Sequence record: KJ019143.1
Length of the DNA: 64,000 nucleotides
Strand: one strand, 5' to 3'
The position numbers were made by a program, and so were the translations under genes. The notes under the pieces are model-generated. The model was not told the DNA's origin. It made no database searches and was given only the letters and a program-made list of their open reading frames with translations. Each line of letters starts with the position of its first letter. The first letter of the stretch is position 1. This document shows positions 29,356-54,344 of the stretch, piece by piece.

Positions 29356-30109
29356 GGGTTATGTTGTTATTGCACTTGGCGATAAGTATGTTCAACTCGC
29401 CAAGAACTTTGAAGATACACTAAGACAAAACGGTGACAATCGTCCTGTTCATGTTGTCACTGAAGACATGATTGATAAGGATAATGATAAGTACAGGGAC
29501 TGTGATGTTCCCAACGAAAGGTATAACTGCTACCCCAAACTTCACTTCAATGAGTATGCGATATTTGATCATAGTATCCTAATCGATGCCGATGTTCTGT
29601 GCGTAGGTGATACCCAACACGTTTGGGATATGTGTAAAGAACAGGAACAGTTTATTCTTCACCGTGGGTGGGGACAAGTTACTAAATGGAATAGAGAACT
29701 ACAGAAGAAAGTGTGGGACGTTCATGGGTTCGTACCTCCTCGCATTCACGGAGCTTTCTGTTATCTAAGGAAGGCAGATATCAATGAAGACTTCTTTGAA
29801 TTTATCCAAAATAATGTGTGGTTTCAGTATACTGAATGGTGTACGGAAGATGTCAAAGCAAGACATCACAGGTTAAGTAGATCAGACCAGGTGATATATG
29901 CTATTGGTTATGGTAAGTTTGATCTCATGCCCTGTCAGTTAATGGAAGTCCCTATTATGACTCATATATTGACAGCGGCACACGTTAATCCTCCATACGA
30001 TAGAATCACTTTTAAGGATCAAATTGGACCCGATTTACAACATCCAGTGGCATTTGCCCATATCGAACAACTATTTCAGGAGAGCACCCCAGAAAGTTTT
30101 CTAAGGTGA
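29348..30109 (+). CDS. Glycosyltransferase (GT-A, GT8-like)
   Basis: YPKL, ILIDADVL DxD motif, SDQVIY. Confidence 0.7.
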   Translation: MTEGYVVIALGDKYVQLAKNFEDTLRQNGDNRPVHVVTEDMIDKDNDKYRDCDVPNERYNCYPKLHFNEYAIFDHSILIDADVLCVGDTQHVWDMCKEQEQFILHRGWGQVTKWNRELQKKVWDVHGFVPPRIHGAFCYLRKADINEDFFEFIQNNVWFQYTEWCTEDVKARHHRLSRSDQVIYAIGYGKFDLMPCQLMEVPIMTHILTAAHVNPPYDRITFKDQIGPDLQHPVAFAHIEQLFQESTPESFLR

Positions 30110-30189
30110 CAGTCCACAAACTGGCACACAGGGCTTGGCAACCCTCCAAAAAGGTGCTATACTATCCAAGTAACCAAAGGAAATGATTT

Positions 30190-30411
30190 ATGAAACCAGC
30201 AGAAATTCTCTACGAAATGCAATCCATTCGTAAAGTCTGGCATAATAATAATTTCGTTATCAGTCCCGAACTAAACCGTCGCTATTGTGAACTTCTTAAA
30301 CTCCGCCGTGAACGAGTTTCTCAATTCTATAAAGAGGGAAGGGTCGCTACAGGATCACAGACCCCCGACCTCAAAGCCCGAGAAGCCGCAAGACAAGCCG
30401 AGGTTGGTTGA
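30190..30411 (+). CDS. Hypothetical protein
   Basis: Follows element copy 30105 and AAAGGA SD. Confidence 0.72.
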   Translation: MKPAEILYEMQSIRKVWHNNNFVISPELNRRYCELLKLRRERVSQFYKEGRVATGSQTPDLKAREAARQAEVG

Positions 30412-30415
30412 GCCT

Positions 30416-30655
30416 ATGCAGGAACTTCTAGATACTTTCTATACAACTCCCTATGGTGATTTTGCCATTAGAAAGACTCGTTTCGGTGTTCATACCTCAT
30501 ATGATCGAGAGGGAACCGATTTGGTGACAGGTTTAGAGTGGATTGACGTATTCACCACCACACCTTGTCACCTACAATGGGAGAAGGAGGGTTACAAACC
30601 CCCCGAAGGTACAGTTCAAGCAACCTATGATAGTGTAGTCTCTGGAAAACTCTAA
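30416..30655 (+). CDS. Hypothetical protein
   Basis: ATG 30416 avoids overlap; ends YDSVVSGKL. Confidence 0.68.
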   Translation: MQELLDTFYTTPYGDFAIRKTRFGVHTSYDREGTDLVTGLEWIDVFTTTPCHLQWEKEGYKPPEGTVQATYDSVVSGKL

Positions 30656-31002
30656 TGGAAGACCGAAAATCACAACTATACAGCATCATGTATGATGCCA
30701 TCAGTGAATTAACTGAGCATGAGAGTGCTGAGGATATCTTTGACAATATTGTAGAGTATTTTGCTCTACGTGTTGAAGAAGCCCGTACTGAGGTTGATAC
30801 TTACACGGATATGTTAAACGTATTCCGCAAAGACAACCCAGTGAGAGACGTTCCTAGTGCAGATCCATACAAGAGAACTGAATGGGAACACGCATTTGGT
30901 GATATGGATGACATCAATCAAACATACATGCCATCAAACCAACACATCTGGAACGAGTTTCTTAAGAATATCAAATTCACGGACAATCAAGATACTAAAT
31001 AA
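30655..31002 (+). CDS. Hypothetical protein
   Basis: Coupled TAATG start, 115 aa. Confidence 0.7.
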   Translation: MEDRKSQLYSIMYDAISELTEHESAEDIFDNIVEYFALRVEEARTEVDTYTDMLNVFRKDNPVRDVPSADPYKRTEWEHAFGDMDDINQTYMPSNQHIWNEFLKNIKFTDNQDTK

Positions 31003-31022
31003 ACACTATCAGGAGAAAAGAG

Positions 31023-31220
31023 ATGACTACTGACCCAAACGATAAGTACGCTAAGTTCAAAGTACCATTTGGCACTAATGAACATCACGAAGATGATGAA
31101 TGGGATCCCACAACTGAGGGTAAAATCTCTGATTGGCACAACCGACATCAAGATAAACTCTTAGATGAGTTTTGTGACACTCACCCAGGCGCACCCCAGT
31201 GTAAGGTGTTTGACGATTAA
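31023..31220 (+). CDS. Small protein with CP12-like C-terminal motif
   Basis: FCDTHPGAPQCKVFDD matches CP12 C-x8-C-x2-[YF]DD; TAAATA at 30996-31001. Confidence 0.62.
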   Translation: MTTDPNDKYAKFKVPFGTNEHHEDDEWDPTTEGKISDWHNRHQDKLLDEFCDTHPGAPQCKVFDD

Positions 31221-31290
31221 CAAAGTGGCACAAGACCACTTGACAGTACCACATTATTAGGTTACAGTACATTTGTTCAAGAGGTTTCTC

Positions 31291-31461
31291 ATGACTACCG
31301 TTGTTGATTCAGAGGTTATCTTTGCTGACGCTTTCAGTGAAGATGGTATAGACTACGGAACTGGTTATTATGTAACTAAGTTCTATAGCAATGGTATGAC
31401 CGACCTATTTGGACCATACAATTTTGAGGAAGACGCCCTCAATCTTGCCACTGTTTATTGA
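31291..31461 (+). CDS. Hypothetical protein
   Basis: GAGG SD before ATG 31291, after TTGACA promoter. Confidence 0.6.
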   Translation: MTTVVDSEVIFADAFSEDGIDYGTGYYVTKFYSNGMTDLFGPYNFEEDALNLATVY

Positions 31462-31636
31462 TTCCTTCCTTTTTATTATGACTTTTGACACCTACGAAGA
31501 CGAAAGTATCTTCACTATTCTCGGTATTGCCGAAGAAGGTGAAGAAGAAACAGAAAACCCCTATTCCACTGAGGATACTAAAACACTAAAAGAATATGGC
31601 TATTGATTTCTCGTTCATTCTAGGTTTAGTTTTCAT

Positions 31637-31966
31637 TTGGTTGGGACTAAATATCCGTATAGTGAGAGAGGTGGAATAGTGGATTTCAGGGTAACAGTAA
31701 GAACACACACCGGGGCAGTTAGAGTTGTCGAGGTGAGCAACATGCCGAACGAGGAGGCAGCCAGAGCGGAAGCTGTTGGTATGACTTTCGGTAGGGTTCT
31801 GCAGGTTGAGTGTTTAGATGAGATCCCAGAACAATCCAAACCTAAAAAGAAAAGAGGACCAGTTCAAGAGATTGAACGAGAACTTAGACCAGGTGAAACC
31901 GAAACAATTGTAACAGGTTACAATAGCAACCCGTTAGCAGTGTTCTTCACTTTAGATGTTTTTTAG
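31637..31966 (+). CDS. Hypothetical protein
   Basis: 109-aa ORF, start uncertain (GTG 31679 possible). Confidence 0.55.
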   Translation: MVGTKYPYSERGGIVDFRVTVRTHTGAVRVVEVSNMPNEEAARAEAVGMTFGRVLQVECLDEIPEQSKPKKKRGPVQEIERELRPGETETIVTGYNSNPLAVFFTLDVF

Positions 31967-32019
31967 GGGTTGACACACCCCTTTTTTTGTGCTATACTTA
32001 TACCAATCGCAGGAGATCA

Positions 32020-32286
32020 ATGGAAGAAAACATGTCGATTTCGACAGAACTTCTAACCAGCATAAACGACGCCATGTATGTTGCCACTAACAACGCAGCT
32101 ACTTACATGCACGGTGATAGAGGTGCTGACGCTATGTGTCTCCTAAACGAGTGGACTACAGAGGATGGTGAATGTTTACTCACACAATATGCAAAGGGTG
32201 AAGTATGTGAGCACATGGGAACTTTCATGTTTATCAACCTAGAAGAAGAAACATGGGGTGAGTTTATTATATCCGATGATGAGTAA
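32020..32286 (+). CDS. Hypothetical protein
   Basis: AGGAG SD after TTGACA-17-TATACT promoter (31970-31998). Confidence 0.68.
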   Translation: MEENMSISTELLTSINDAMYVATNNAATYMHGDRGADAMCLLNEWTTEDGECLLTQYAKGEVCEHMGTFMFINLEEETWGEFIISDDE

Positions 32287-32533
32287 ACTATATACTACAG
32301 ACAATTATTCAGGTACAATGAACCTAACTGAACATCAAAAGATTCAACTCTCACAATTTATTCATGAGTCGTTCTCTACATTCTATGAGGAGGAACTAAA
32401 GTTTCAAGTAGAAACTCTAAAAGATGATGATAAGTTGGATTGGACTTATACAATCACACCAAGAGACTCAGGGGAGATTTATGATAAGGTTCAGGAATTA
32501 TTCACACTGGAAAGGCGTGTGACAGTAGAATAA
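32276..32533 (+). CDS. Hypothetical protein
   Basis: Ends RRVTVE* inside element 32518. Confidence 0.62.
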   Translation: MMSKLYTTDNYSGTMNLTEHQKIQLSQFIHESFSTFYEEELKFQVETLKDDDKLDWTYTITPRDSGEIYDKVQELFTLERRVTVE

Positions 32534-32599
32534 GTGACACAAGGGGGGTTGGCAAACCCCCTTTTTGCTGCCATAATATACTCATACACACAAAGACCA

Positions 32600-32728
32600 A
32601 TGAACGTCCCCAACTGGCAGAAACACTCCAAGAAAGACCAGAAGGGTCGCGGAGTGAGCAAGGGTCAGATGAGAGCCCGCAAACAGGCTCTACGTGCCCT
32701 AAAGGCAAAGCTCCTTGTGACAGTCTAG
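32600..32728 (+). CDS. Small basic hypothetical protein
   Basis: MNVPNWQKHSKK...LLVTV*, single gene between two elements. Confidence 0.65.
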   Translation: MNVPNWQKHSKKDQKGRGVSKGQMRARKQALRALKAKLLVTV

Positions 32729-32798
32729 GAAGTGGCACAAGCCCCCTAGGCAAGACCCCCAAACCCTGCTATACTAAACACATACAAAGGAAACCACC

Positions 32799-33203
32799 AT
32801 GGCTCGTCACTCTGAAGTTCTCATCCAAGGCACTGAAGTTCCTGGTCTTCGTATGATCGTAACCGTCCCCGTTGACCACACCTGGGCATCAGAAACCGCC
32901 GAGAGTATCTATGGATTTGGTGGCAACACCCAATACATCTGGCGGAAGTCTTGGGAGACTAACCAACCCGCTCGTCGCAGTGGTGGTGGTTCCTCCTCCT
33001 CTGGAATGGGTCCTGGAGCTATCCTGATGGGGATGATTGGTCTTATCCTGGTTGCTGGTATTGGTTCCGCCTTTGAGGATGACTCCCCCTCAGCTCCTTC
33101 CTATGACGCTCCCGCACCTATTGAGCGGACATATGTCCCACAGGCACCCGCAGCCTCCTATGACAATGGCCCTTGTCTAACCGCTAACTTCGAACCTTGT
33201 TAA
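32799..33203 (+). CDS. Hypothetical membrane protein
   Basis: One TM segment, Pro/Ala-rich C-terminus. Confidence 0.7.
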   Translation: MARHSEVLIQGTEVPGLRMIVTVPVDHTWASETAESIYGFGGNTQYIWRKSWETNQPARRSGGGSSSSGMGPGAILMGMIGLILVAGIGSAFEDDSPSAPSYDAPAPIERTYVPQAPAASYDNGPCLTANFEPC

Positions 33204-33370
33204 TATGAAAGACTTTCGTCCTCCGCATCACACCACCACTAAAGAAGAGTGGGAGTTTATTTTCCAAACACAGATACATAACTGCGCCCAACTAAAGAAC
33301 ACAGAACTCCAACGTTTTGTGTGTGTAGATAGTACGGGCAACAAAACTACCAAATACGTTATCGAATACA

Positions 33371-33661
33371 ATGACTGAAAAAGAAGTAGAGCTACACTTT
33401 GGGAGTGAGTATGAGGCTGGCATTGACTATGGGGATAGTGATGATTCAGACATTTTAGACTACACCAAAGAAGTAAGTGTCACACTAACCCGTTCAGATT
33501 GGAATTGGTTTGTTACACTGATGTCAGACTCCGTTAATAAGATGGAGGCTGCAGTTTCTGCACAAGGTATGGATGCTGAGTCCTTCCTTTCTATTGATGT
33601 TCTTCGCACTATTCGTAATGAAATCGCAACTCAGAGTGGGCTCACTCAATACATTGATTGA
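33371..33661 (+). CDS. Hypothetical protein
   Basis: 96-aa acidic ORF in operon. Confidence 0.62.
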   Translation: MTEKEVELHFGSEYEAGIDYGDSDDSDILDYTKEVSVTLTRSDWNWFVTLMSDSVNKMEAAVSAQGMDAESFLSIDVLRTIRNEIATQSGLTQYID

Positions 33662-33662
33662 G

Positions 33663-33935
33663 ATGCCAGTAGTGGCACCTAAAGGTTATCACTATGAGGC
33701 AGTAGAACACAAACAAAACGTAGTGGCTATTTGGTTATGTGGAGGTCCAACATACCTCTACAAGATGGGAGAAACTGCTAGAACTATTCACTCCTTCTAT
33801 AATATTAAGAAGAAAACCTGGTATGCACCTATCAACTGCAAGAAGCCAGGTAAGGAGGTATCAGTGGATAAGATACGACCTTACACATCAATGCAACTGA
33901 ACTACAACCCTCTGGAGATGCTACTATATGGCTAA
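33663..33935 (+). CDS. Hypothetical protein of a cyanophage-type family
   Basis: PKGYHYE..HSFYNIKKK..PINCKKPGKEV..PYTSMQLN. Confidence 0.72.
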   Translation: MPVVAPKGYHYEAVEHKQNVVAIWLCGGPTYLYKMGETARTIHSFYNIKKKTWYAPINCKKPGKEVSVDKIRPYTSMQLNYNPLEMLLYG

Positions 33936-33970
33936 ATATATGTTATAATAACATAACATATATCACGAAT

Positions 33971-34192
33971 ATGAAGTCCAAAGACCAATACAAGAAAGAG
34001 TTTCAATTCACACTGAATACATCTGATGATAAGATCGCGGAAGAGAATATTCTTCACGATTTCGCCAGAGAGGTTTCAGTTATTGATGCTTTCCTACAAG
34101 GTGGGAAGGTATCACTAAAGGAGGCAAAACAGCGTATCAAAGATGTATACAAAGTGTGGAAGAACTCACTGAAAAACAACAACCAAATGTAA
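33971..34192 (+). CDS. Hypothetical protein
   Basis: TAAATA at 33933-33938 upstream. Confidence 0.65.
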   Translation: MKSKDQYKKEFQFTLNTSDDKIAEENILHDFAREVSVIDAFLQGGKVSLKEAKQRIKDVYKVWKNSLKNNNQM

Positions 34193-34579
34193 ATGGAACC
34201 TTTCCTGCTAATGGCTGTTGATGTAGCTGAGTCTTCACCTTCTAGAAAGAAGGTTGGAGCTGTTCTAATGAATAAGAACAAAGTTATAGCAACAGCCACA
34301 AATCATGATTGTAAATCACACCCTCTACAAGCAAAGTGGGCAGAACGTGTGGGACTATCTGAAAAGATATATCTACACGCTGAAATGTCAGCAATGATCA
34401 AAGCTCGTGATGACTCAGACAAAATCGTTGTAGTTAGACTAGGAGGACATTCTGGTCACGAACTACGACAATCTCGTCCTTGTCCTATATGTGAATCATA
34501 CCTGAAACATTCAGGCATTGAACACGTATATTATTCCACTGGGAATAACAAATTTACCTATGAATACTGGGGGAAATGA
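34193..34579 (+). CDS. Zinc-dependent nucleoside/nucleotide deaminase (CDA superfamily)
   Basis: LHAEMSA and SRPCPIC zinc motifs, KVGAVL strand. Confidence 0.88.
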   Translation: MEPFLLMAVDVAESSPSRKKVGAVLMNKNKVIATATNHDCKSHPLQAKWAERVGLSEKIYLHAEMSAMIKARDDSDKIVVVRLGGHSGHELRQSRPCPICESYLKHSGIEHVYYSTGNNKFTYEYWGK

Positions 34580-34776
34580 TGGAAACGTTCACAGCAACTT
34601 GTCCCAAAGACTACGACAGACATCACTATTCAGTTGTCAACAAAGACGGCACGAATAGGATGTTTAGTAGTTGGGAACTCGCACAGAGTTACTGGTGGCA
34701 TACTAACAAACTTGGTACACTATCACACATCGATGTGATAGACTATAAAGAACAATCAAGAGGTTTTGGAGCATGA
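34576..34776 (+). CDS. Hypothetical protein
   Basis: Coupled ORF; CPKDYDRHHY. Confidence 0.65.
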   Translation: MMETFTATCPKDYDRHHYSVVNKDGTNRMFSSWELAQSYWWHTNKLGTLSHIDVIDYKEQSRGFGA

Positions 34777-34991
34777 ACATGTTGGGTAAACAATCAGAGA
34801 CTGGGATGAAAGTAACCTTTCTTGGTTATATCCCAGAACAAGTGAAGTTTGCAGGATCTGACACACCAGACAAACTGAATACCACTACAACATATACCAT
34901 TGAACAGGTAAAACGATTCAACTCGTATACCAAGATCAAACTAGTTGGTGATGATCTGTGGTATAATTCAGTTCACTTTAGAGTTACTTAA
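34773..34991 (+). CDS. Hypothetical protein
   Basis: Coupled ORF. Confidence 0.65.
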   Translation: MNMLGKQSETGMKVTFLGYIPEQVKFAGSDTPDKLNTTTTYTIEQVKRFNSYTKIKLVGDDLWYNSVHFRVT

Positions 34992-35191
34992 TGGATAACA
35001 TCTATGGGCGTGAGTATCACAGACATGCTGTTGATTACGCTCTGATGATAGGTGAGTTAGAAGGAACTTACACTCACCTGAAACGAATGTCTTACTTTGA
35101 GGATGCTGCTATCCTTGAAGAAATGAAGAAACGTTACTACAAGATCTACTTCCGTACCTTACGTGAAGAAAGAGAAAAAGCAGAAAACTAA
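34991..35191 (+). CDS. Hypothetical protein
   Basis: Coupled TAATG start. Confidence 0.62.
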   Translation: MDNIYGREYHRHAVDYALMIGELEGTYTHLKRMSYFEDAAILEEMKKRYYKIYFRTLREEREKAEN

Positions 35192-35209
35192 CCTAATTGA
35201 GGATTTTGA

Positions 35210-35518
35210 ATGGTGTTAACTTGGACCGACGAAGAGAAAGTAAACCTAACCCGTGCAGAGGTTAGTATTCATGGGGAGAATATCACTCCAGATAAACTAG
35301 ACAACAAAACTCTACCAACAGATATTCATGTCATTGAATATGAGATGGAAGGTGTAACTTACTACGACGCGGTTCGTGCCTACAAAATGGTTAGCATCTT
35401 TGATGTATATCACGATAAGCTAAAAGGTGGTGGTAAAGTTGTTAGAATCACCAATGGGTATGGTAGCATTAGACCTAACCTGTGGAACAACAATAAGAGT
35501 GAGAAAGGTGATGAGTGA
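35210..35518 (+). CDS. Hypothetical protein of a cyanophage-type family
   Basis: LPTDIHVIEY..YYDAVRAYKMVSIFDVYHD..GYGSIRPNLW. Confidence 0.72.
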   Translation: MVLTWTDEEKVNLTRAEVSIHGENITPDKLDNKTLPTDIHVIEYEMEGVTYYDAVRAYKMVSIFDVYHDKLKGGGKVVRITNGYGSIRPNLWNNNKSEKGDE

Positions 35519-35690
35519 GAGGAAGTCTGAAGACTGGATTAGTGAGTGGAAAGGAATGAATGATGAGTTCATTGAAGAAGACACTATGTTCAGACTTGAC
35601 ATTCCTTCCACTGAAAAGACACAAGAATGGATGGATAGAGAACCATTAATCTTAAAAGTAGATCACTCGAAGTATTATTTTGATGACTGA
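35511..35690 (+). CDS. Hypothetical protein
   Basis: Coupled ORF. Confidence 0.55.
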   Translation: MSERKSEDWISEWKGMNDEFIEEDTMFRLDIPSTEKTQEWMDREPLILKVDHSKYYFDD

Positions 35691-35886
35691 AGAAGATCCA
35701 ATGATCAACTGGAAACAGAAGATGATGAAACATTGCACCCACGATTGGGAAAAGCAACTATTACGTGAAGGTGCCACATCATCTGTGACAGCAATGGGTA
35801 TAATGTCACTAAAGAAACGATACAAAAGGATTATGGGTATTGATGATGATCCAAAGCCACCTGTAGTTCAGTACGCCTCCTATTGA
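35680..35886 (+). CDS. Hypothetical protein
   Basis: Coupled ORF. Confidence 0.62.
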   Translation: MMTEEDPMINWKQKMMKHCTHDWEKQLLREGATSSVTAMGIMSLKKRYKRIMGIDDDPKPPVVQYASY

Positions 35887-35892
35887 TACTTT

Positions 35893-36297
35893 ATGAATAA
35901 GAACAAGCACAATGAGACTGTAGGATCTACAGTAGAAAGATCAGACGAGAGGATCAAAGACACTGGGGAGGTATTCACTCCCCTAGAACTGTGTCGTGAG
36001 ATGGTGAACGAGATCCCCGAATCTACCCTACAAGATCCCAACTCCACCTTTTTAGATAATTCTGCTGGCTGTGGTAACTTCCTCATCGCCCTCAGGGACC
36101 GGCTATTGGAATATCATGAGTTATCACATATCGTAGACAATATGATCTACTGTGTGGAACTTATGGAGGACAACCATAGGGAAATATGTAAGACAATGGG
36201 TGTATCTACCGATCATCCACACTATGTAAGGGCAAATGCACTGGAATACGATTATAGCTTCGGCAACCCCGTTGGGTTGGAAGGTTTCTTCGTGTGA
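35893..36297 (+). CDS. Short N6-adenine DNA methyltransferase-like protein (SAM-binding half only)
   Basis: TGEVFTP, FLDNSAGCGNFL, VELMEDN; no NPPY motif; stop inside element 36293. Confidence 0.8.
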   Translation: MNKNKHNETVGSTVERSDERIKDTGEVFTPLELCREMVNEIPESTLQDPNSTFLDNSAGCGNFLIALRDRLLEYHELSHIVDNMIYCVELMEDNHREICKTMGVSTDHPHYVRANALEYDYSFGNPVGLEGFFV

Positions 36298-36374
36298 CAC
36301 CTGAATAACTGGCACAAGGGGGGTAGGCACCCCCCTTTTTTTGTGCTATACTACATTCATACCAAACCAATACT

Positions 36375-36835: not shown

Positions 36836-36836
36836 T

Positions 36837-47621: not shown

Positions 47622-47953
47622 TTAGCAAACTGTTTTCACTATCTCTTGTTCTTGCGGGTTCTATCTTACCCGCACAGTCATACCCCAATATCGTATATTG
47701 GGAACGCATTGATTGTAACCTCATCACCGAAACTATCCAGAAGTGTGATAGGTACAATGGGCAGAATGGAGTTTTCATCGAATCATACTACCTGGACATA
47801 TACACAAACGAACATAGCTTTATAGATCCACGAGGACCTGAAATAGTTGTACCTGATGTAATAGAAGAAGAGACACTAGATGATATCCAACCTGATGTAG
47901 AATACAACGAACCGATAACAACAACAGACCCACTCCTGAATGATAGTTACTGA
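47618..47953 (+). CDS. Hypothetical exported protein
   Basis: Signal peptide, acidic tail. Confidence 0.6.
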   Translation: MISKLFSLSLVLAGSILPAQSYPNIVYWERIDCNLITETIQKCDRYNGQNGVFIESYYLDIYTNEHSFIDPRGPEIVVPDVIEEETLDDIQPDVEYNEPITTTDPLLNDSY

Positions 47954-48071
47954 TTTTTCCATATTCCTGTCGGCAACCACCTCCTACCATACCCCCTGCC
48001 AAACCGATATGGATTTTTCACCTTTTCCGTCTAGTGACTCACTGGGTTCTCAGTGGGACCAAAATGAGAAT
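47950..48071. repeat. Non-coding fixed-spacing element, copy B
   Basis: Same four blocks and offsets as 38121-38262. Confidence 0.8.
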
Positions 48072-48191
48072 CCACCCCCATACCCCCAGACAGAGCAAAA
48101 CTCATAACCATGTGACAGTTGGATTAGTGGCACACGAAAGCCCGCAAACCCCTCAGGGGGTGCTATACTAAACCCATACACAACAAAACCA

Positions 48192-48548
48192 ATGATCTAC
48201 TCTATCACTCACCAGGAGACTGGCATTACGTATTCAGTTAGCACTGAAGATATTCGTAAAGTTGCTAACATCCTCCCAATGAACTCTGAGGAGTTGGCTG
48301 ACATGATGACAGGTCTGAATTGTGACTCATATGCAGATATGGCAGAAGAGTATATTGAAGAAGTTGCGGATATGTATGATGATGTGGCACTGGCAACTGA
48401 TAAGTTTATGAGTAGCACTGATGAAAGGGCACAAACAACGTTCGCCTACTATCGTATCATGAACTGTGATAACTCTGATGAAGTGACTACACAATATTGG
48501 CGTGATGACGCTATGGCTATGATCACTGACTACAATGATCGCAAATGA
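48192..48548 (+). CDS. Acidic hypothetical protein
   Basis: First gene of cassette. Confidence 0.68.
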   Translation: MIYSITHQETGITYSVSTEDIRKVANILPMNSEELADMMTGLNCDSYADMAEEYIEEVADMYDDVALATDKFMSSTDERAQTTFAYYRIMNCDNSDEVTTQYWRDDAMAMITDYNDRK

Positions 48549-48856
48549 AACGCTACGGACTTTATTGGCTGAGAGCTATCACCCTAGGTGCTGGTCTAAA
48601 CTTTGTTTTGACTGGTTACCTTATGGGCCACCAAAAGTGGAAGTTTCAACATGCAGCTCCACTCTCAGCGTTTATCTGTGTGAATCTATCGTATGTGGCG
48701 GATCGTCTCATCTTTGGTGATAAGAAGGAACCTGAAGATTTAGATCCAGATACTATTGTTATATCAACCCCACATTGTTGCCCCGTATGTTCAGAGTATC
48801 CTTGCACTTGTGACAGTTGGGAAAGTGGCACAACCCCCCTAGGCAACACCCTCTGA
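48545..48856 (+). CDS. Hypothetical membrane protein
   Basis: Two hydrophobic segments, CCPVCSEYPCTC; reads into element 48809. Confidence 0.58.
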   Translation: MKRYGLYWLRAITLGAGLNFVLTGYLMGHQKWKFQHAAPLSAFICVNLSYVADRLIFGDKKEPEDLDPDTIVISTPHCCPVCSEYPCTCDSWESGTTPLGNTL

Positions 48857-48892
48857 ACCTGCTATACTAAACACATACCAAAGGAACCAACC

Positions 48893-49090
48893 ATGAAAGT
48901 CTCTCAGGAAGTTTTCAAGAGTTACATTCAGATACTGGATGAAAACACACAAACATCATGGGATATCCTAAATGTTTTGAATGATATTGTTAGAGGTGAC
49001 TGGGATAACTCAGTCCAGTATTGTTTGGAAAATCCATCAGGCGACCCTATGGATGATTTCAACTACGCAGGCAGTCGCCACCACTATTGA
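48893..49090 (+). CDS. Hypothetical protein
   Basis: First gene of cassette. Confidence 0.65.
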   Translation: MKVSQEVFKSYIQILDENTQTSWDILNVLNDIVRGDWDNSVQYCLENPSGDPMDDFNYAGSRHHY

Positions 49091-49119
49091 TCACTAACTC
49101 ACCACACTAACTAACAACT

Positions 49120-49404
49120 ATGACACGCACTCCAATGACAGTCACCCTCAAGCGTAGCGACTGGGAATGTTATACAGACACCCCCGATACTATCATCGAA
49201 ACTATCAACTCATACTTCTCTTATGTGTTATCAACTAAAGATAACGCGTTTGATGCACAGTCTGAGATATTCAAGTTTCTGAATATGTTTAGTGAGTTTG
49301 GGTTTATGGATAGTGAGTGCCTAGAATGTGCAACTAGAGTCATCAACAGATATTTCGATTCATACCTCTCCCGATGGAGCCAGGTGGGTGATGTGACAGT
49401 CTAA
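49120..49404 (+). CDS. Hypothetical protein
   Basis: Ends DVTV* in element 49392. Confidence 0.65.
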   Translation: MTRTPMTVTLKRSDWECYTDTPDTIIETINSYFSYVLSTKDNAFDAQSEIFKFLNMFSEFGFMDSECLECATRVINRYFDSYLSRWSQVGDVTV

Positions 49405-49472
49405 GAAGTGGCACACGCTTCTCCGCAAACCCCTCAGGGGGTGCTATACTATATTCATACCAAAGGAACCAA

Positions 49473-49790
49473 ATGAATTTCAGAACACTAGCACTCACCA
49501 CCACCCTGGCTCTCTCCACTGTCCTAGGTGGTTTGGCTCCTGAAGCTAAGTCAGCTGACTTTTGTGACAACATCCCCGGCAACTCGGGATACGTTTGTGT
49601 TACCATGGGTCTCTGGTTCGACTTGGTTGAGGCAGACATACCCGCCTTTGGTGGTAAAGAGTCATTACACATCACCTGTGACAATGGCTGGTCATATCGA
49701 TCTAATGGTAACTGGAACAAAGACGCCGCTTCCCTTGTGGCTAAGGAATACTGTGAAGGTGCTGGCTGGAACAGCCACTCCGAGGTGTGA
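49473..49790 (+). CDS. Exported 4-Cys protein (paralog of 45786-46067)
   Basis: Signal peptide ending AKS; C..GYVC..GKE..ITC..W.YRSNG..A..AKEYC. Confidence 0.75.
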   Translation: MNFRTLALTTTLALSTVLGGLAPEAKSADFCDNIPGNSGYVCVTMGLWFDLVEADIPAFGGKESLHITCDNGWSYRSNGNWNKDAASLVAKEYCEGAGWNSHSEV

Positions 49791-49869
49791 CAGTCTAGGA
49801 AGTGGCACAAGCCCCCTAGGCAAGACCCCTCGGGTCTGCTATACTATATTCATACCAAACAAAGAAACC

Positions 49870-50136
49870 ATGTTCCCACACCTCCACATCTCTGAATCAA
49901 ACCTCGGACCTCACACCTCCATGTTTTTCAAAGTATCATCACAACCACAAGATGAGTGGCAGAATGGCATTTTCCATAACTCACCTTATGGCATCTTTCA
50001 CCTTCATTCTGAGAAAGGTGTTTATAAGTTGGAACTATCTTCCTCAGGTTTGAATACACCTAAGTTTCGCAAGTGTAAGTGTGAAGATGAACTTACCGCA
50101 CTCACTAAGATTCGTCAGTGGATGGATAAGTTCTGA
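49870..50136 (+). CDS. Phage hypothetical protein
   Basis: SSQPQDEWQNGIFHNSPYGIF..FRK; ATG after element leader. Confidence 0.72.
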   Translation: MFPHLHISESNLGPHTSMFFKVSSQPQDEWQNGIFHNSPYGIFHLHSEKGVYKLELSSSGLNTPKFRKCKCEDELTALTKIRQWMDKF

Positions 50137-50171
50137 TATTATCTAACACAAACCACTCACAACAAACTATC

Positions 50172-50345
50172 ATGAACCGACTAGAACTACTGACCCAACG
50201 TGAACAACTGATGGAGAGGATTGACTCTATCTGTGATGAATTCTTTTATAAGAACTATAATGGAGATACATCAGAAGCAGACGAATTAGTTCGTATTCTA
50301 TGTGATGCTGTTTGTGAAACCATAGACCCAGCGGGCATGGTGTGA
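50172..50345 (+). CDS. Small hypothetical protein (57 aa, not in ORF track)
   Basis: MNRLELLTQREQLMERID..LCDAVCE; stop in element 50341. Confidence 0.62.
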   Translation: MNRLELLTQREQLMERIDSICDEFFYKNYNGDTSEADELVRILCDAVCETIDPAGMV

Positions 50346-50424
50346 CAGTTGGAGAAGTGGCACACGCTTCTCCGCAAGACCCGCCTCACCTGCTATACTA
50401 TATTCATACCAAAGGAAACCGACC

Positions 50425-50688
50425 ATGTTCCAAGTCTGTACCGAAGACGCTCTAGATCACCGCTACACAATTGATGAGTTTGAGACACTGGAAGAAGCCC
50501 AATCTTGTTATAACGAGTGTGTGAAGGTTGGAGCTGAGGGTTATGAGATTTCGGTTGAGTTAGAGGAAATCATTGGCGATCATGATGATTACGTTTCCAT
50601 CGAGTTCACCGAGTGGTTTACACAAGAGAGTTGGGAGGAAGCTCATCCCTGGAATGAGAAGGAAGGAGTATGGGAAAACATAGACTGA
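50425..50688 (+). CDS. Acidic hypothetical protein
   Basis: Single-gene cassette. Confidence 0.68.
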   Translation: MFQVCTEDALDHRYTIDEFETLEEAQSCYNECVKVGAEGYEISVELEEIIGDHDDYVSIEFTEWFTQESWEEAHPWNEKEGVWENID

Positions 50689-50775
50689 TGTGACAGTTGG
50701 AGAAGTGGCACAAGCCCCCTAGGCAAACCCCTCCATACCTGCTATACTAAACACATACCAAACAAAGGAAACCAC

Positions 50776-51117
50776 ATGACCACCACCCAAACCAAAACCG
50801 AGTTCCTCACCGAGGCAATGATCGAACAGGTGAACAACCTCTGGAAGGTTTATAACGTGGAGTCAGGTCACACCATCACCCCACTTCTTAAGTATGAAGT
50901 GGCTAAGAAGTACATCAAGGTCTATCGTTTAGACGTTGTGAATGGTGAGATTCGTGACGGTCGTTCAGTGTTTATGTTTATCGATAAGGAGACTGGTGCA
51001 GTTCTGAAACCAGCCTCATGGAGAGCACCCGCTAAGGGTATCCGGTTCTACATTGAGTCGTTGGCTGAGAATCCTGAGCTGGTTGATCAGTATGGTAGTT
51101 TCCTCTACCGTCGCTGA
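50776..51117 (+). CDS. Phage hypothetical protein
   Basis: KKYIKVY..RSVFMFIDKETGAVLKPASWRAPAKGIRF. Confidence 0.78.
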   Translation: MTTTQTKTEFLTEAMIEQVNNLWKVYNVESGHTITPLLKYEVAKKYIKVYRLDVVNGEIRDGRSVFMFIDKETGAVLKPASWRAPAKGIRFYIESLAENPELVDQYGSFLYRR

Positions 51118-51199
51118 TGTGACAGCCACCAAGGTGGCACAGGGGGGCTAGGCAGCTCCCCTTCTTTATGCTATACTATATTCATACCAAAGGACCCCG

Positions 51200-52453
51200 A
51201 TGACCCTCACTCTCCGCCCCCACCAACTAGAAGCACTTCAGGTGATGGCTGAGACTCGTCTTGGTCAGATATTAGTTCCTACTGGTGGTGGTAAGACATT
51301 GATTGCCATCATGGACGTTGTGAGGACTCTAGAGAACGCAGGAACCCCTCAGACCATCGTTGTGGTGGCACCTAGGATATTGTTAGCCCAGCAACTCTGT
51401 AGTGAGTATATGGAGGTTCTGAGCGATAGGTTCGCCAACGTTATCCCCGCCCATATTCACTCAGGTCATACACCTCACTTTTCTACCACTAATATTCAGA
51501 AGATCCATCTTTTCGAGAAGATGATGGATACCGCCAACCTCCACCGCATATATTTCACCACATACAACTCACTTCCACGTTTAGCAGAAGCAGGTGTAAG
51601 TGTCGATACTATTATGTTCGACGAAGCTCATAACTCCACTCGTAATGACTTCTATCCCGCTACCAAGTATTTCTCACAGACCGCTAGTCGTTGTTACTAC
51701 TTTACAGCAACTCCCCGTCACTCAGTAACATCCAAGAGACACGGAATGAACGAGTCTGATGTATACGGACAGGTTATCTACAATGTTCCTGCCCCTACAC
51801 TTGTACAGGGTGGGTTTATCATCCCTCCTCAGGTTCGTGTTAAAGAGATGGAGTTCGTAGCTAAACATGAGCTCATCTCACAACGTGACACAAACCACCT
51901 CATCTCTTGTATTGATGACAACAACACGAGCAAAGTTCTAGTTTGTGCTAAGTCAGTCAAACAGATCATGCGTATGTTTAGTGAGACCGATATCAGCCAA
52001 CAACTTGATGATCGTGGTTTCTCCTATATGTACATCTCAGCTAAGACTGGTGGTGTTATCAATGGTAAGAAAGTATCACGTACTATGTTCTTCGATACTC
52101 TAAACGAGTGGGGTAAGGATAACAACAAGAAGTTCATTGTTCTTCATCATTCTATTCTCTCTGAGGGTATCAATGTAAGTGGTCTAGAGTCCGCTATCTT
52201 CTTACGTACTATGGACCACATTACTATCTCCCAAACGATTGGACGTGTCATTCGATTACATAAGGATGATGCTAAAGCTATGAGAGATGGTTCGATTCGC
52301 CCCGGTGATCTTAACTCCTATACTAAGTCCTTTGGTTTGTGTATTGTTCCAGTTTATTCTAAAACACAACAAACAGTTGCTAAGTCTCTTCAGGCAGTTG
52401 TTAATACCGTCTTTGTGGAAGGTGAAGCAGCAACCACAGTTGTGAGGCGTTAG
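51200..52453 (+). CDS. Superfamily 2 helicase (DExH, type III restriction Res-like)
   Basis: VPTGGGKT Walker A, FDEAH, FTATP, ILSEGINV, QTIGRVIR. Confidence 0.92.
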   Translation: MTLTLRPHQLEALQVMAETRLGQILVPTGGGKTLIAIMDVVRTLENAGTPQTIVVVAPRILLAQQLCSEYMEVLSDRFANVIPAHIHSGHTPHFSTTNIQKIHLFEKMMDTANLHRIYFTTYNSLPRLAEAGVSVDTIMFDEAHNSTRNDFYPATKYFSQTASRCYYFTATPRHSVTSKRHGMNESDVYGQVIYNVPAPTLVQGGFIIPPQVRVKEMEFVAKHELISQRDTNHLISCIDDNNTSKVLVCAKSVKQIMRMFSETDISQQLDDRGFSYMYISAKTGGVINGKKVSRTMFFDTLNEWGKDNNKKFIVLHHSILSEGINVSGLESAIFLRTMDHITISQTIGRVIRLHKDDAKAMRDGSIRPGDLNSYTKSFGLCIVPVYSKTQQTVAKSLQAVVNTVFVEGEAATTVVRR

Positions 52454-52561
52454 TATGAATTATCAAAACCAAGCTCTTGTGATACTTCTAGGTCTAATGT
52501 TCATAGCTGGTATTAACGTACTTCACTATGAACAACAATGGCAATGTAGGATGCATCAAAC

Positions 52562-53272
52562 CTATTGTTTTGTTTCTGAATAATACCATAAGTATCCTTT
52601 CCAACGCGAACCCCATTTGATAGAAGTACAAATACCCTTCCCACGATCCTCCTCATTAAAGGATCTCATCGCATCACTAATAGAGTCAAACACGGGAGTA
52701 ACATGACCAGTCTTATGAACTCCATAGACTTGTTTCTTATTCTTAGCGTGTTTATGAATCCACCATTTATAACCATATGCCGAACCCTCTCTTGTGATAC
52801 TTCTCCTGATATTTGATGGCCTACCATTCACAAACTCAGCGGCAGCAACCCAACCATGAAAGGTCTTAATCTTACCCGTTTCCAAGCACCTACACTTGAT
52901 GACGTTCTTATCATGTTTCTTAGGTTTCTTCTTTCGTTGATAACCCCATCTCCTATCCCCGTTATGATATGACTCTTTATTATTCAGCTTCCTAGTCTTA
53001 TGTTCTAACACCAAATTGTTATACTCAGGGTTATACTTATTCATCCAATATTCCACTCGTTCAGTAAGCTTATTCTCATTCACTTCTTCTAGTATACGTA
53101 TAGTAAAGTCATCGGAGTTATAGTAAGATAAGGCATTCGACAGAGGAGTATTTTCCTCCTTATGATTTTCCAATATCCCAGCCCAAACTTTATTCAGGGG
53201 AAGCGTATCATAACCGATGTATTTGTGAGAGGTTTGTCTATTCAAGATGATGTAGATGTTTGTGATGCTCAC
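52562..53272 (-). CDS. GIY-YIG homing endonuclease-like protein with NUMOD-type DNA-binding repeats
   Basis: NIY-x10-YIG, FTIRILEE, YNPEYN; FHGWVAAAEFV..AYGYKW and FDSISDAMR..WKGYLW. Confidence 0.8.
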   Translation of the reverse strand: MSITNIYIILNRQTSHKYIGYDTLPLNKVWAGILENHKEENTPLSNALSYYNSDDFTIRILEEVNENKLTERVEYWMNKYNPEYNNLVLEHKTRKLNNKESYHNGDRRWGYQRKKKPKKHDKNVIKCRCLETGKIKTFHGWVAAAEFVNGRPSNIRRSITREGSAYGYKWWIHKHAKNKKQVYGVHKTGHVTPVFDSISDAMRSFNEEDRGKGICTSIKWGSRWKGYLWYYSETKQ

Positions 53273-53351
53273 GGGAAATAGTCTCTATTCTGGTTGTATA
53301 TATAAACATTATCTTTTTTTATCACATGTGTTTGTTTATCTCCCTATTGGA

Positions 53352-53644
53352 TGTTATAATAGAAAGGAAGAGATCAACGTATATAACCAATGGAATTACC
53401 TAGGTAAGGATGAATAGAATAACCAATAGATTAACCTAGTAAGAAGTGATCTAATAGAAGGTAATCATATAGAGGAAGGTGAATAGAAAGCCCTATAGAA
53501 AGACCCAATAGAATGTAATCTAATCCATTGTAATCACCTATAGGATAGTATCATATAACGAGGTCTTTACAGCTCACTAAGCTCCTCCTAAACTCCACTG
53601 CCCGTTGCATATAAAGATCCATAGAAAGGTCTCTGCCCGTTGCA
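53352..53644. repeat. Non-coding tract with ~9 ATAGA(A) repeats and a 12-bp direct repeat
   Basis: ATAGA near 53359, 53414, 53426, 53454, 53469, 53483, 53495, 53508, 53621; CTGCCCGTTGCA at 53598-53609 and 53633-53644. Confidence 0.75.
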
Positions 53645-53807
53645 ACCTAAGCCCACCCTACCACGGGATTCCATTTTTGCCAAGGGATCTCCGAAAAACT
53701 TAATATTTCCGAGACACCCCAGACACCCACGGAACTGGCACAAACCCCCTTGGCAAACCCCCCGAAATGGCATATACTATATTCATACAAACAAAGGGAA
53801 CCGACCC

Positions 53808-54041
53808 ATGGAATTCATCCAAACTGACTACCCCGCTAACATGGCTCCCAATGTTATGGAGAGGAACTATGGTCGGGGTATCATCCTGACTCAGGTCAAT
53901 GAGGATGGTGTCATTCCATTCTCAGTATTCAATTTCAAAAAAGAGGATTGGAACTGGGGAGCTGACTACTACATGACCGAGCATAACTTCTATACACTAG
54001 AGGAGGCAGAGGCGGTAGTGACTCAGCTCGTAGCCAGCTGA
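53808..54041 (+). CDS. Hypothetical protein
   Basis: Single-gene cassette. Confidence 0.68.
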   Translation: MEFIQTDYPANMAPNVMERNYGRGIILTQVNEDGVIPFSVFNFKKEDWNWGADYYMTEHNFYTLEEAEAVVTQLVAS

Positions 54042-54114
54042 ACCACTGGCACATGGGGGCTAGGCACAGCCCCCTCTATACCCTATACTATATTCATACC
54101 AAAGGGAACACCCC

Positions 54115-54273
54115 ATGACCAAAGCAACTCAGAGACCTTCCACCCAGAGCCGTTACACCAGCCAGGTAGCCCAGGACCGTAAGGCAGCGGCACTCCAGAG
54201 GGCAGAGGAGCGTCGCCTCACGGGTTCTGCCGACGTGGATCAGGTGAACCGCCTCTACACTGTGACACTCTGA
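54115..54273 (+). CDS. Small hypothetical protein (52 aa)
   Basis: Single-gene cassette ending YTVTL* in element 54261. Confidence 0.58.
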   Translation: MTKATQRPSTQSRYTSQVAQDRKAAALQRAEERRLTGSADVDQVNRLYTVTL

Positions 54274-54344
54274 TAACTGGTACACAGGGGGTTGACAATA
54301 CACCCCCATGGCTCTATACTACACTCATACACAGATCCAACCCC

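Follow-up and report, generated by a model that had tools for sequence, protein, structure and literature searches.

Upstream genes abut or enter a conserved palindrome in a predicted array of PeSL-type early-promoter cassettes of a T4-like cyanophage

RESULTS

An array of repeated elements in the hyperplastic region

The window analyzed here (bases 1 to 64,000 of KJ019143.1) derives from Synechococcus phage ACG-2014f, a T4-like cyanomyovirus of the Kyanoviridae. Between 27 and 55 kb, it contains 24 full and 6 degenerate copies (~30 in total) of an ~85-bp element, no copy of which was found in the rest of the 64-kb window. The motif GTGACA-N10-TGGCAC matches 24 times on the plus strand, between positions 27227 and 54262 (chance expectation, <0.01); GTGACA by itself is not enriched within the window. 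Together, the elements form an array (27226..54345, plus strand) that occupies the hyperplastic region, from a tail-fibre-like gene to genes beyond a helicase gene. Judged by its sequence features, this region is an array of ~30 cassettes of the promoter-early stem-loop (PeSL) type, with predicted early timing.

Each element consists, in order, of a palindrome, a sigma70-like promoter, and a conserved leader with a Shine-Dalgarno sequence, followed by an ATG that opens one small open reading frame (ORF) or a group of a few. The palindrome spans 24 bp (TGTGACAGT-N6-A[C/G]TGGCACA) and lies at about -66 to -43 relative to the predicted transcription start; its left edge is sharp, with conservation starting abruptly at the T before GTGACA (position 0 in our numbering, such that the G is +1). 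The promoter consensus comprises a -35 hexamer of TTGGCA or TAGGCA, a 17-nt spacer, and a TG-extended -10 hexamer of TATACT, and scanning for sigma70 sites gives at least 19 predicted element promoters that score 9 to 11 out of 12 with a 17-nt spacer, most of them having TG before the -10. The palindrome is common to >100 cyanophage-like viral contigs and >100 otherwise dissimilar promoters, and of 85 elements in other viral contigs, 72 have a -35 hexamer whose first base is +30 or +31. In the six degenerate copies, the left arm has decayed and the right arm and promoter are retained. The A at +4 is preserved in 23 of the 24 full copies in the window although only 7 use the resulting TGA as a stop codon; the arm TGA is thus intrinsic to the motif.

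Where upstream genes end

Stop positions were taken from the GenBank CDS table, and all elements described below lie on the plus strand. Twenty-two of 27 upstream ORFs stop within -3 to +61 of the palindrome, and upstream ORFs as a whole fall into several classes, most of which the earlier note had already listed correctly. (i) The arm TGA (+2) terminates seven genes: CDS 29348-30109 at element 30105..30189 (GGTGACA...ACTGGCACA), CDS 35893-36297 at 36293..36374 (with a canonical terminator hairpin over the -35), CDS 38828-39073 at 39069..39153 (with ATG 39154 as the true start of the gene that follows), CDS 46101-46259 at 46255..46338 (whose spacer can pair with bases past the right arm, placing that arm in a hairpin loop), CDS 46339-46563 at 46559..46643, CDS 49473-49790 at 49786..49869, and CDS 50172-50345 at 50341..50424. 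(ii) Five genes read V-T-(V/L) through the left arm and stop in the spacer: CDS 32279-32533 at 32518..32599 (V-T-V-E, stop at +13; right arm TGACACA and a terminator-like hairpin), CDS 32600-32728 at 32716..32798 and CDS 41664-41915 at 41903..41984 (both V-T-V, with TAG at +10), CDS 49135-49404 at 49392..49472 (V-T-V, TAA at +10), and CDS 54115-54273 at 54261..54345 (V-T-L, TGA at +10; right arm TGGTACA and -35 TTGACA). The counterpart of CDS 41664-41915 reads V-P-V where the genome's left arm is TGTGCCA. CDS 32279 and 49135 appeared in the earlier note as ORFs 32276 and 49120, which are the same genes with alternative starts.

(iii) Flush stops, with TGA at -3 to -1 against the T, end CDS 41034-41579 at 41580..41663 (with a terminator hairpin), CDS 50425-50688 at the mosaic element 50689..50775, and CDS 50776-51117, which keeps a native C-terminus, at 51118..51199 (with a terminator hairpin, ahead of the helicase gene). 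(iv) Read-through extends to +31 for CDS 42890-43084 at 43051..43134 and CDS 45560-45736 at 45703..45785, and to +45 for CDS 48545-48856 at 48809..48892, which is translated through the palindrome (CDSWESGT...), as is its S-CAM7 homolog. To these we add CDS 37043-37177, which runs to +61 at 37114..37233 (a perfect palindrome with right arm TGTCACA and a decayed -10) and whose tail varies between genomes.

(v) Also missing from the earlier list are stops slightly upstream of the palindrome, at the elements anchored at 27227, 39729, and 39986: the tail-fibre-like CDS 25110-27218 stops at -10 of 27226..27317 (with a complete palindrome, a G6/C5 hairpin that covers the -35, a T-run, and -10 TATAAT), CDS 39474-39725 stops at -5 of 39728..39807, and CDS 39808-39975, with a native C-terminus, stops at -12 of 39985..40068. 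(vi) At five degenerate copies (anchors 31210, 39386, 45259, 45478, and 54031), stops lie 5 to 9 nt (for one copy, 2 nt) before the right arm: CDS 31023-31220 stops at +9 of 31209..31290 (left arm TTTGACG), a CDS ending at 39396 stops 5 nt before the right arm of 39385..39473 (no left arm), CDS 45051-45260 uses the TAG of the left arm TAGGACA in 45258..45344, CDS 45345-45491 stops 2 nt before the right arm (TGTCACA) of 45477..45559 (no left arm), and CDS 53808-54041 stops 5 nt before the right arm of 54030..54114. The sixth degenerate copy, 53719..53807 (left arm CAGACA), has no upstream ORF on the plus strand. There is likewise no annotated ORF within 150 nt of the elements anchored at 38284 (38283..38388; left arm TGTGCCA, making a perfect palindrome, and a decayed promoter) and 48112 (48111..48191, where the 158 nt upstream contain no annotated ORF).

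Other viral contigs supplied 86 distinct elements, which de-duplication reduces to 70; of the 86 upstream stops, 67 fall at -3 to +15, 9 are located farther upstream, and 10 are past +15. The palindrome directly follows or surrounds the stop in ~80% of cases. Both the repeat and the lack of spacer DNA are non-random.

Hairpins and the palindrome

G-tract/C-tract hairpins are frequent in the elements: stable GC hairpins (z < -2) occur in 16 of 30, at positions that vary as in PeSL subclasses (covering the -35, in the stretch from the -35 to the -10, or surrounding the right arm). Only five elements contain look-alikes of canonical intrinsic terminators, whose terminator role is predicted from sequence, and the remaining hairpins are weak.

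The palindrome itself could act as a 3′ RNA hairpin of the upstream gene (a terminator, stabilizer, or processing site), with the terminating ribosome controlling its folding. Its placement at the stop codon would suit such a role, the stem-loops of coliphage PeSLs do terminate transcription (PMC2839356), and copies with ACTGGCAC can make an 8-bp stem; however, folding of the palindrome by itself is weak (median, -4.6 kcal/mol), z-scores are near zero in four of the six copies folded in a 61-nt context, and a conserved A.G mismatch sits in mid-stem. Nor does it resemble an intrinsic terminator, as no T-run (U-tract in the RNA) follows it after +23. Across divergent phages, it is the sequence that is conserved and not the pairing, the palindrome keeps a fixed phase with the -35, and matches to Rfam families numbered zero. 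On balance, a function as an RNA hairpin is unlikely.

C-termini and genome compaction

As the earlier note had observed, unrelated proteins share ends encoded by the element, including a terminal VTV, a final V from GTG-TGA, and the tails VTPQKLAQDP and CDSWESGTTPLGNTL. Replacement of native C-termini, which the note had named as a point to check, finds no support where it could be assessed: homologs lacking the element end at the same residue or within 1 to 6 residues of it, the outcome that the note had said would indicate simple genome compaction. The end of ORF 50776 (...YLYRR/MR/AR) is kept in >10 element-less homologs; ORFs 39808 and 31023 stop at the residue where their homologs stop (element-less ones in the case of ORF 31023); and ORF 46339 equals in length four element-less homologs, whose stop codon is likewise TGA. 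In cases of differing tails, the protein from the window has 1 to 6 additional residues, roughly the element-encoded portion. These C-termini suggest that genes in a compact genome have run on into the element, and not that their ends were replaced.

The 49 junctions without an element in this window are also tight, with a median gap of 1 nt and overlap in 49% of them; in S-PM2d, the median intergenic length is 6 bp (PMC5931967). Between genomes, indels of one codon or one nucleotide are seen precisely where the ORF meets the arm, and the same arrangement of stop and element is found in S-CAM7 and S-PM2d. Upstream genes most probably enter the palindrome through a lack of spare DNA and not through splicing-in at that spot.

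Recombination between elements

Elements form the borders of cassette indels and replacements, with crossovers inside the elements. In KJ019151, a 3-kb cassette is inserted at element 36293..36374, the cassette at 39985..40068 is missing from several genomes, element 45258..45344 is recombinant relative to KJ019151, and ORF 49473-49790 is swapped for another ORF between the same two elements in KJ019151. We compared recombinant elements with both parental elements across nine ACG-2014f genomes (the window and eight relatives), a small sample of ~7 independent events, for which the crossover intervals are +9 to +11, +14 to +61, +17 to +30, +33 to +42, +35 to +45, +42 to +76, and about +63.

These positions bear on the resemblance to integron cassettes raised by the earlier note, which had further placed the junctions at the left arm. 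The comparison is apt as a likeness and was already drawn by the authors who described PeSLs (PMC2839356): both systems present arrays of small unrelated ORFs between imperfect palindromes, and stop codons may overlap the repeat. The left-arm junctions, in contrast, find no counterpart in the data, as all crossovers fall within +9 to +76 and none in the arm. Under site-specific capture at an attC-like palindrome, genes would be joined at the left arm and the junction itself would create their stops and C-termini. Several observations speak for such a process, namely the abrupt onset of conservation at the arm, the accumulation of stops at -3 and +2, and an allele that apparently has a whole element (T0 to ATG) inserted after TGA: element 41580..41663 is entirely missing in KJ019151 and KJ019101, where the two flanking genes overlap as ATGA. 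The geometry of the palindrome (9-nt arms and a 6-nt centre) is also akin to that of recombinase core sites. However, the flank left of T0 in that allele is not cleanly conserved, crossovers are spread over ~70 bp rather than at a fixed point, and a single cassette indel has three distinct junctions among genomes. A Pfam scan of the 10 larger ORFs (at least 128 aa) yielded no integrase or recombinase domain. Every cassette has its own promoter-like site, unlike integron cassettes, which are promoterless and share one promoter; the repeat is conserved in sequence and not in structure only; and native C-termini are kept in element-less homologs. Capture of this kind is therefore very improbable.

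Reading frames into the element

In the 86 elements from other contigs, upstream ORFs enter in the three frames uniformly (27:30:29; chi-square P = 0.92), so that the share of ORFs using the arm TGA (7 of 22 in the window and 25 of 86 in other contigs, i.e., about one third) is that expected by chance. Stops at -3 occur in 17 of 27 frame-0 ORFs versus 4 of 59 others (P = 7e-8), and spacer stops occur for 20 of 30 ORFs that need them versus 19 of the 56 without such a need (P = 0.006); the stops belong to the ORF and are not built into the element. The idea that the overlap itself was selected, with the element having evolved stops in three frames to insulate cassettes, draws on a common spacer (GTTGAATAAG) that supplies stops at +2, +9, and +13, one per frame, but is scarcely tenable when unused -3 stops are at background (the above 4 of 59 versus 7%), unused spacer stops amount to 34% versus the ~30% that we estimate from the fixed AA at +14/+15, and ~12% of ORFs extend at least 25 nt into the element.

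The flush class has a very narrow distribution, 17 of its stops lying at -3 and none at either -6 or -9, which simple random deletion does not obviously predict. Moreover, none of the 30 frame-1 ORFs stops just ahead of the arm, at -5, so the spacing between stop and palindrome may be under some form of selection.

DISCUSSION

We consider it highly probable that this region belongs to a maximally compact genome in which PeSL-type cassettes are shuffled by homologous recombination. Genes end in the element because the genome keeps no free intergenic DNA: with compaction presumably driven by deletion, each upstream ORF would come to abut or enter the following element at its first constrained base. 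An ORF arriving in frame 2 would meet the TGA intrinsic to the left arm; one in frame 0 would keep its own stop flush at -3 or use the stop at +9; and one in frame 1, for which the fixed arm (GTG ACA GTN) offers no stop, would read V-T-x to a spacer stop at +10 or +13, or further. With stop position set by frame alone, the element-encoded residues would be incidental C-terminal additions. Through homologous recombination among elements, or through gene conversion, cassettes would be gained, lost, and swapped, with crossovers that may fall anywhere in the ~80 bp right of the arm, and each ORF would thus remain linked to its own left arm.

PeSLs were described in the T4-like phages RB49/phi1, T4/PST, and KVP40/nt-1 (Arbiol 2010, PMC2839356; Comeau 2014, PMC4122927). 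By definition, they open with the upstream gene's stop codon and end with the Shine-Dalgarno sequence and the next start codon, and their crossovers map to the interval from the -10 to the ATG, to that from the Shine-Dalgarno sequence to the -10, or to the loop (PMC2839356). Their stem-loops, often polyG/polyC, take one of several positions and serve as terminators or attenuators, and PeSLs also give rise to excised mini-circles. The present elements match this pattern in being dense intergenic repeats in the hyperplastic region of a T4-like phage, in extending from the upstream gene's stop codon as far as the Shine-Dalgarno sequence and ATG, in their sigma70-like promoters with a 17-nt spacer, in their variably positioned G-tract/C-tract hairpins, and in flanking indels and replacements of small ORFans with crossovers within the element. 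They differ in the cyanobacterial host of the phage, in having canonical terminators in only a minority of copies, and in that the AT-rich upstream region is replaced by the conserved 24-bp palindrome (TGTGACAGT-N6-ANTGGCACA) in fixed phase with the -35. The one cyanophage study that we found to have looked for PeSLs, on S-PM2, reported few (PMC4503421).

Other systems share single aspects of this arrangement. In halovirus HF2, intergenic repeats carry promoters (PMC8707807), and these repeats are not known to include a stop-overlapping palindrome. In the stop/start overlaps of compact phages (ATGA, -4, and -8), a gene end shares bases with the next signal and sharp preferred offsets are set by sequence compatibility, whereas the shared signal here is an upstream promoter module and not a start codon or Shine-Dalgarno sequence. 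The morons of lambdoid phages are small genes that travel with their own promoters, but are not known to have conserved flanking repeats mediating exchange or a palindrome overlapping stop codons.

The part that may be new is the sequence-conserved palindrome, held at a fixed distance from the -35 in >100 cyanophage-like contigs. Its fixed position upstream of >100 dissimilar promoters suggests a putative operator for a dimeric DNA-binding factor, of phage or host, that might act on the whole set of predicted early promoters of T4-like cyanophages, a possibility that we advance tentatively and regard as somewhat doubtful. If it is correct, the packing of stop codons would simply mark the hard left boundary of the palindrome. 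T4-like cyanophages are reported to lack MotA and AsiA; if that holds, such a site could represent the absent switch by which early transcription is turned on or off.

Architecture of the repeat element

The window is bases 1-64000 of KJ019143.1, from isolate Syn7803C12 of Synechococcus phage ACG-2014f, a T4-like cyanomyovirus (Kyanoviridae, Atlauavirus), and its coordinates coincide with those of the record; the phage collection holds 44 more records of the same species, which are 95 to 99% identical and differ in gene content across the array region. The ~85-bp repeat element of this array runs from a 24-bp palindrome (left arm GTGACA, right arm TGGCACA) through a promoter and a leader to an ATG; positions are counted here with the T before GTGACA as 0. 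By itself, GTGACA shows no enrichment across the window (55 observed versus 54 expected); GTGACA-N10-TGGCAC has 24 copies, on the + strand and clustered at 27 to 55 kb, and 6 extra copies keep the right arm and downstream part but have a decayed left arm. The left edge of conservation is sharp and falls at the T before GTGACA, with positions -1 and -2 carrying <0.6 bit. The -35 (TTGGCA or TAGGCA) lies 7 bases 3′ of the right arm, a TG-extended -10 (TGCTATACT) follows 17 bases beyond the -35, and a conserved leader (ATATTCATACCAAAGGAACC) precedes the next ATG at about +80 to +86. A consensus promoter scan recovers at least 19 of the element promoters as predicted sites.

The palindrome is conserved as sequence, not as structure: its predicted RNA fold is weak (median, -4.6 kcal/mol), an A.G mismatch is kept in 22 of the 24 copies, no T-run follows it, and an Rfam scan of 27 to 56 kb at E ≤ 1 matched no family. 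A role as an RNA hairpin or terminator was rejected because the folds are weak and inconsistent. In 16 of the 30 copies, a predicted stable G-tract/C-tract hairpin overlies the -35, falls between it and the -10, or surrounds the right arm; canonical-looking terminators are predicted in 5. The fixed phasing to the -35, the conservation of sequence rather than pairing, and the acceptance of either A or C at the corresponding position of each arm would all fit a putative dimeric DNA-binding protein at the palindrome.

Two further features of the element can be recorded. The spacer can pair with the bases just after the right arm, in two types only (GGAGAAG...CTTCTCC or CTAGG...CCTAG), at 46262-46290, 50348-50376, 39735-39763, 32722-32750, and 49792-49820; this pairing would place TGGCACA in a hairpin loop and is broken in the mosaic element 50690. 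With two types, either linkage or selection may account for it. In addition, TGGCAC followed by TTGCA or TTGGCA at +17 to +36 resembles a sigma54 -24/-12 promoter. Judged on sequence, this candidate was rejected, and the likeness is probably coincidental, since the spacing is 3 nt longer than canonical; cyanobacteria are not known to have sigma54.

Distribution of the palindrome in other phages and genomes

A search of viral contigs with the exact pattern TGTGACAGT-N5-AAN-TGGCACA matched at least 120 stretches. The promoters downstream of these matches are very diverse. In 72 of the 85 cases that could be scored, the -35 begins at +30 or +31, so that the palindrome would span approximately -66 to -43. 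S-CAM7 (Mazuvirus) and S-PM2d (Nodensvirus) carry the same cassettes, sometimes without the left arm, and S-PM2d gene 054 stops at the TGA of a TGTGACA arm. Among S-CAM7-like relatives (L163 1356-1440; S-CAM7 ~33.8 to 39 kb), the right arm is often GTGTCCAC rather than GTGGCACA and the -10 is TACAAT or TATATT, with the position of the upstream stop unchanged. In one group of viral contigs (L014 649-672, L031, L027, L057, L089, and similar), the palindrome sits in the conserved context gtcaacccccct TGTGACAGTTATACAACTGGCACA ctagttcaag, with no recognizable promoter after it and no long ORF overlapping it.

GTDB contains exact matches to the palindrome in 30 bacterial contigs (e.g., L130 1420-1443), 11 to 12 of them cyanobacterial, representing ~4 independent loci. 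Cyanobacterial matches are from Nodularia (four), Xenococcaceae (three), Lyngbya/Limnoraphis, and Cyanothece; in Nodularia, the site is flanked by the 3′ ends of convergent genes, of which one is purH-like. Four matches in noncyanobacterial MAGs look like cyanophage contamination. Because none of the 30 contigs belongs to marine Synechococcus or Prochlorococcus, these matches are uninformative as to a host regulator. A search of IMG/VR for further relatives with a helicase query returned one locus only.

Stop codons at the palindrome

The stop classes that the earlier note had read from the sequence agree exactly with the GenBank CDS table: 7 CDS end at the TGA of the left arm (+2), 5 read V-T-(V/L) and stop in the spacer (+10 or +13), 3 end flush against the palindrome with a TGA at -3, and 3 read through it, as does a fourth, ORF 37043 (ORFs are named by their start coordinate), to +61. 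Outside that list, upstream stops lie at -5, -10, and -12, stops at the degenerate copies (those with a decayed left arm) precede the right arm by 2 to 9 nt, and two elements have no nearby annotated ORF.

For comparison, we assembled 86 distinct elements from other viral contigs, each required to have a -10-like site, an ORF on its downstream side, and a frame open for 30 codons or more on its upstream side. Upstream ORFs enter these elements in frames 0, 1, and 2 at a ratio of 27:30:29 (chi-square P = 0.92), and the arm TGA is the stop in 25 of 86 (7 of 22 in the window); with frames uniform, this usage is what a random frame gives. The nonrandom feature is that upstream ORFs reach the element: 67 stops fall at -3 to +15, with 9 upstream of -3 and 10 beyond +15, and after related junctions are collapsed (leaving 70), the corresponding numbers are 51, 9, and 10.

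Stops at -3 are found in 17 of 27 frame-0 ORFs versus 4 of 59 others (P = 7e-8), the latter fitting a 7% background. Likewise, frame-1 spacer stops are present behind 20 of the 30 ORFs that need them versus 19 of the 56 that do not (P = 0.006), and this second proportion is near the ~30% that we estimate from the fixed AA at +14/+15. Since both kinds of stop are at background when unneeded, they belong to the ORFs, the exception being the arm TGA, an inherent part of the motif. A little room is left for selection on the distance between stop and palindrome, because simple compaction does not account for the absence of stops at -6 and -9 (none, versus 17 at -3) or for frame-1 ORFs almost always entering the arm and rarely stopping at -5. 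A designed three-frame stop was rejected, unused stops occurring at background frequency, as was retention of the left-arm A to supply the TGA: this A (+4) persists in 23 of the 24 copies in the window, whether or not the TGA serves as a stop, and the stop is used in 7.

Compaction and the C termini of upstream proteins

Gene junctions without an element are tight as well. Across 49 of them at 27 to 52 kb, the median stop-to-start gap is 1 nt; in 49% the two genes overlap, and in 61% the gap is no more than 12 nt; the median intergenic length in S-PM2d is 6 bp (PMC5931967). Ending inside or flush with the next signal is thus the rule of the genome and not a peculiarity of the palindrome.

Local tblastn comparison of window ORFs with S-CAM7, ACG-2014b, and ~120 viral contigs shows that, overall, native C termini are kept or are extended by a few element-encoded residues. 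The flush ORF 50776 (...FLYRR) has the same end as more than 10 homologs without the element (...YLYRR, ...YLYMR, ...YLYAR), ORFs 39808 and 31023 finish at the residue position of their homologs, and ORF 46339, stopped by the arm TGA, equals in length four element-less homologs that are also TGA stopped. Extensions amount to 1 residue in ORF 35893 (the V of GTG-TGA), ~3 in ORF 50172, 2 and 3 to 6 in the V-T-V ORFs 32600 and 49135, and ~5 in the read-through ORF 42890. Translation of ORF 48545 continues across the palindrome (CDSWESGT...), and since its S-CAM7 homolog likewise reads through (CDAWKSGS, then stop), this arrangement is old. For ORF 29348, the database search returned close homologs (down to 74% identity) that all share the TGA-in-arm junction, and hence no element-less comparison; its sole distant homolog has a different, longer tail. 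Near-identical genomes differ in such tails: that of ORF 37043 switches with the element variant (…VTVEEVSQAPLANPLKPVIL versus …VTVEEVAHTSPQTP, each followed by the stop), and one-codon or one-nucleotide indels fall exactly at the boundary between ORF and arm in ORFs 46101, 49135, and 50425. The earlier note had raised replacement of C termini, with compaction as the reading if homologs kept the same ends; ends that are kept or slightly extended speak for compaction.

Cassette exchange along the repeat

When the window is aligned with eight further ACG-2014f genomes, cassette insertions, deletions, and replacements are seen to be bounded by elements, with a zone of ambiguity spanning the whole element (about -2 to +78). 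In KJ019151, for example, 3 kb is inserted at element 36294, the cassette of ORF 39808 is missing, and a different ORF stands in place of 49473, exchanged exactly from the ATG to position -4 of the next element. Crossovers were mapped in 12 distinct recombinant elements (~7 independent events) for which both parental elements are present in another genome. The best single crossovers fall at positions 9 to 11, 14 to 61, 17 to 30, 33 to 42, 35 to 45, 42 to 76, or near 63, and a 702-bp cassette unique to KJ019151 is absent from the remaining genomes with three different junctions. Exchange is homologous along the repeat, with no fixed junction. The earlier note's proposal that junctions are made at the left arm is not borne out: among ~7 events in nine ACG-2014f genomes, no mapped interval includes it. 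Consistent with this, an ORF does not change its arm, frame, or stop from one genome to another, while variation is seen in the spacer, right arm, and promoter that follow. A Pfam scan of ten larger ORFs (128 aa or more) in the region found no integrase or recombinase domain.

Whole elements can also be present or absent. KJ019151 (L124 7685-7692) and KJ019101 (L125 15686-15693) lack an element between ORFs 41034 and 41664, which overlap there as ATGA (window 41564-41668); the element-less allele of ORF 41034 ends ...SEQLG, versus ...SEQLDSRY with the element. In its promoter part, this element matches another element of KJ019151 (L124, ~11972) exactly, which suggests that elements are copied to new junctions.

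Gene content and annotation

Genes resembling those of homing endonucleases are located within or next to the array, one in the window (52562-53272, - strand; “cox1-i7 protein,” weak NUMOD1 match) and, as HNH endonucleases, others at different sites in other ACG-2014f genomes (L126 11185-11652; L161 18724-19119); one HNH gene is inserted in the gap before element 38284. Unusually long stretches upstream of elements are annotated as gene free, namely, 38111-38283 (173 nt) and 47954-48111 (158 nt), the latter with a possible ORF of ~33 codons, absent from the annotation, whose start is near 48010 and whose end lies 6 nt short of the palindrome. The GenBank CDS 39085-39396 takes as its start a GTG within the right arm of element 39070 and extends across the promoter; its KJ019151 ortholog starts at an ATG after a Shine-Dalgarno sequence, and an identical ATG is present at 39154, such that the annotated start looks overextended. 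Pfam matches in cassette genes (41985-42890, 28199-28771, 28801-29355, and 35893-36297) are to DUF6267, 2OG-Fe(II) oxygenase, Methyltransf_24, and, weakly, N6 DNA methylase; the annotated “two-component sensor histidine kinase” (CDS 40427-40936) has no Pfam match.

Relation to known systems

Promoter-early stem-loop cassettes (PeSLs) of T4-like coliphages and vibriophages begin at the stop codon of the upstream gene, contain a sigma70 promoter, and end in a Shine-Dalgarno sequence and ATG, with a polyG/polyC stem-loop in one of five positions (PMC2839356; PMC4122927). The cyanophage element shares this stop-to-ATG anatomy and a predicted sigma70-like promoter, and its crossovers lie along the repeat, as measured for PeSL mini-circles; predicted stable G/C hairpins occur in about half of its copies. 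It differs in having a palindrome where PeSLs have an AT-rich upstream stretch. The array is a PeSL-type system in a cyanophage, with a distinct and widely conserved palindromic upstream module. The overlap with stop codons is ordinary and already implicit in the description of PeSLs; like ATGA overlaps between genes, it is the promoter-side equivalent in a genome without spare DNA.

We propose that small deletions would erode the stretch that separates a gene from the cassette that follows, removing every base free of constraint until the first constrained position of the palindrome is reached. Any upstream frame would be tolerated because each meets a nearby stop: frame 2 would use the intrinsic arm TGA, frame 0 would keep a flush native stop or end at +9, and frame 1 would read V-T-x before a stop in the free spacer. 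Thereafter, the element would serve as homology for cassette shuffling.

One cyanophage study reported few PeSL-type elements (PMC4503421), and we found no description of the palindrome in the literature searched, the Syn9 transcriptome (Doron et al. 2016) and Syn9 genome (Weigele et al. 2007) lying outside that search, so that an earlier description may exist. The present analysis documents a dense PeSL-type array in a cyanophage, for which population genomes resolve crossovers to 2 to 50 nt, and brings to light a conserved palindromic upstream module of cyanomyovirus promoters. The element-encoded tails (VTV before the stop, and longer read-through) are incidental and vary between near-identical genomes, which bears on the annotation of these phages and on the interpretation of ORFan families.
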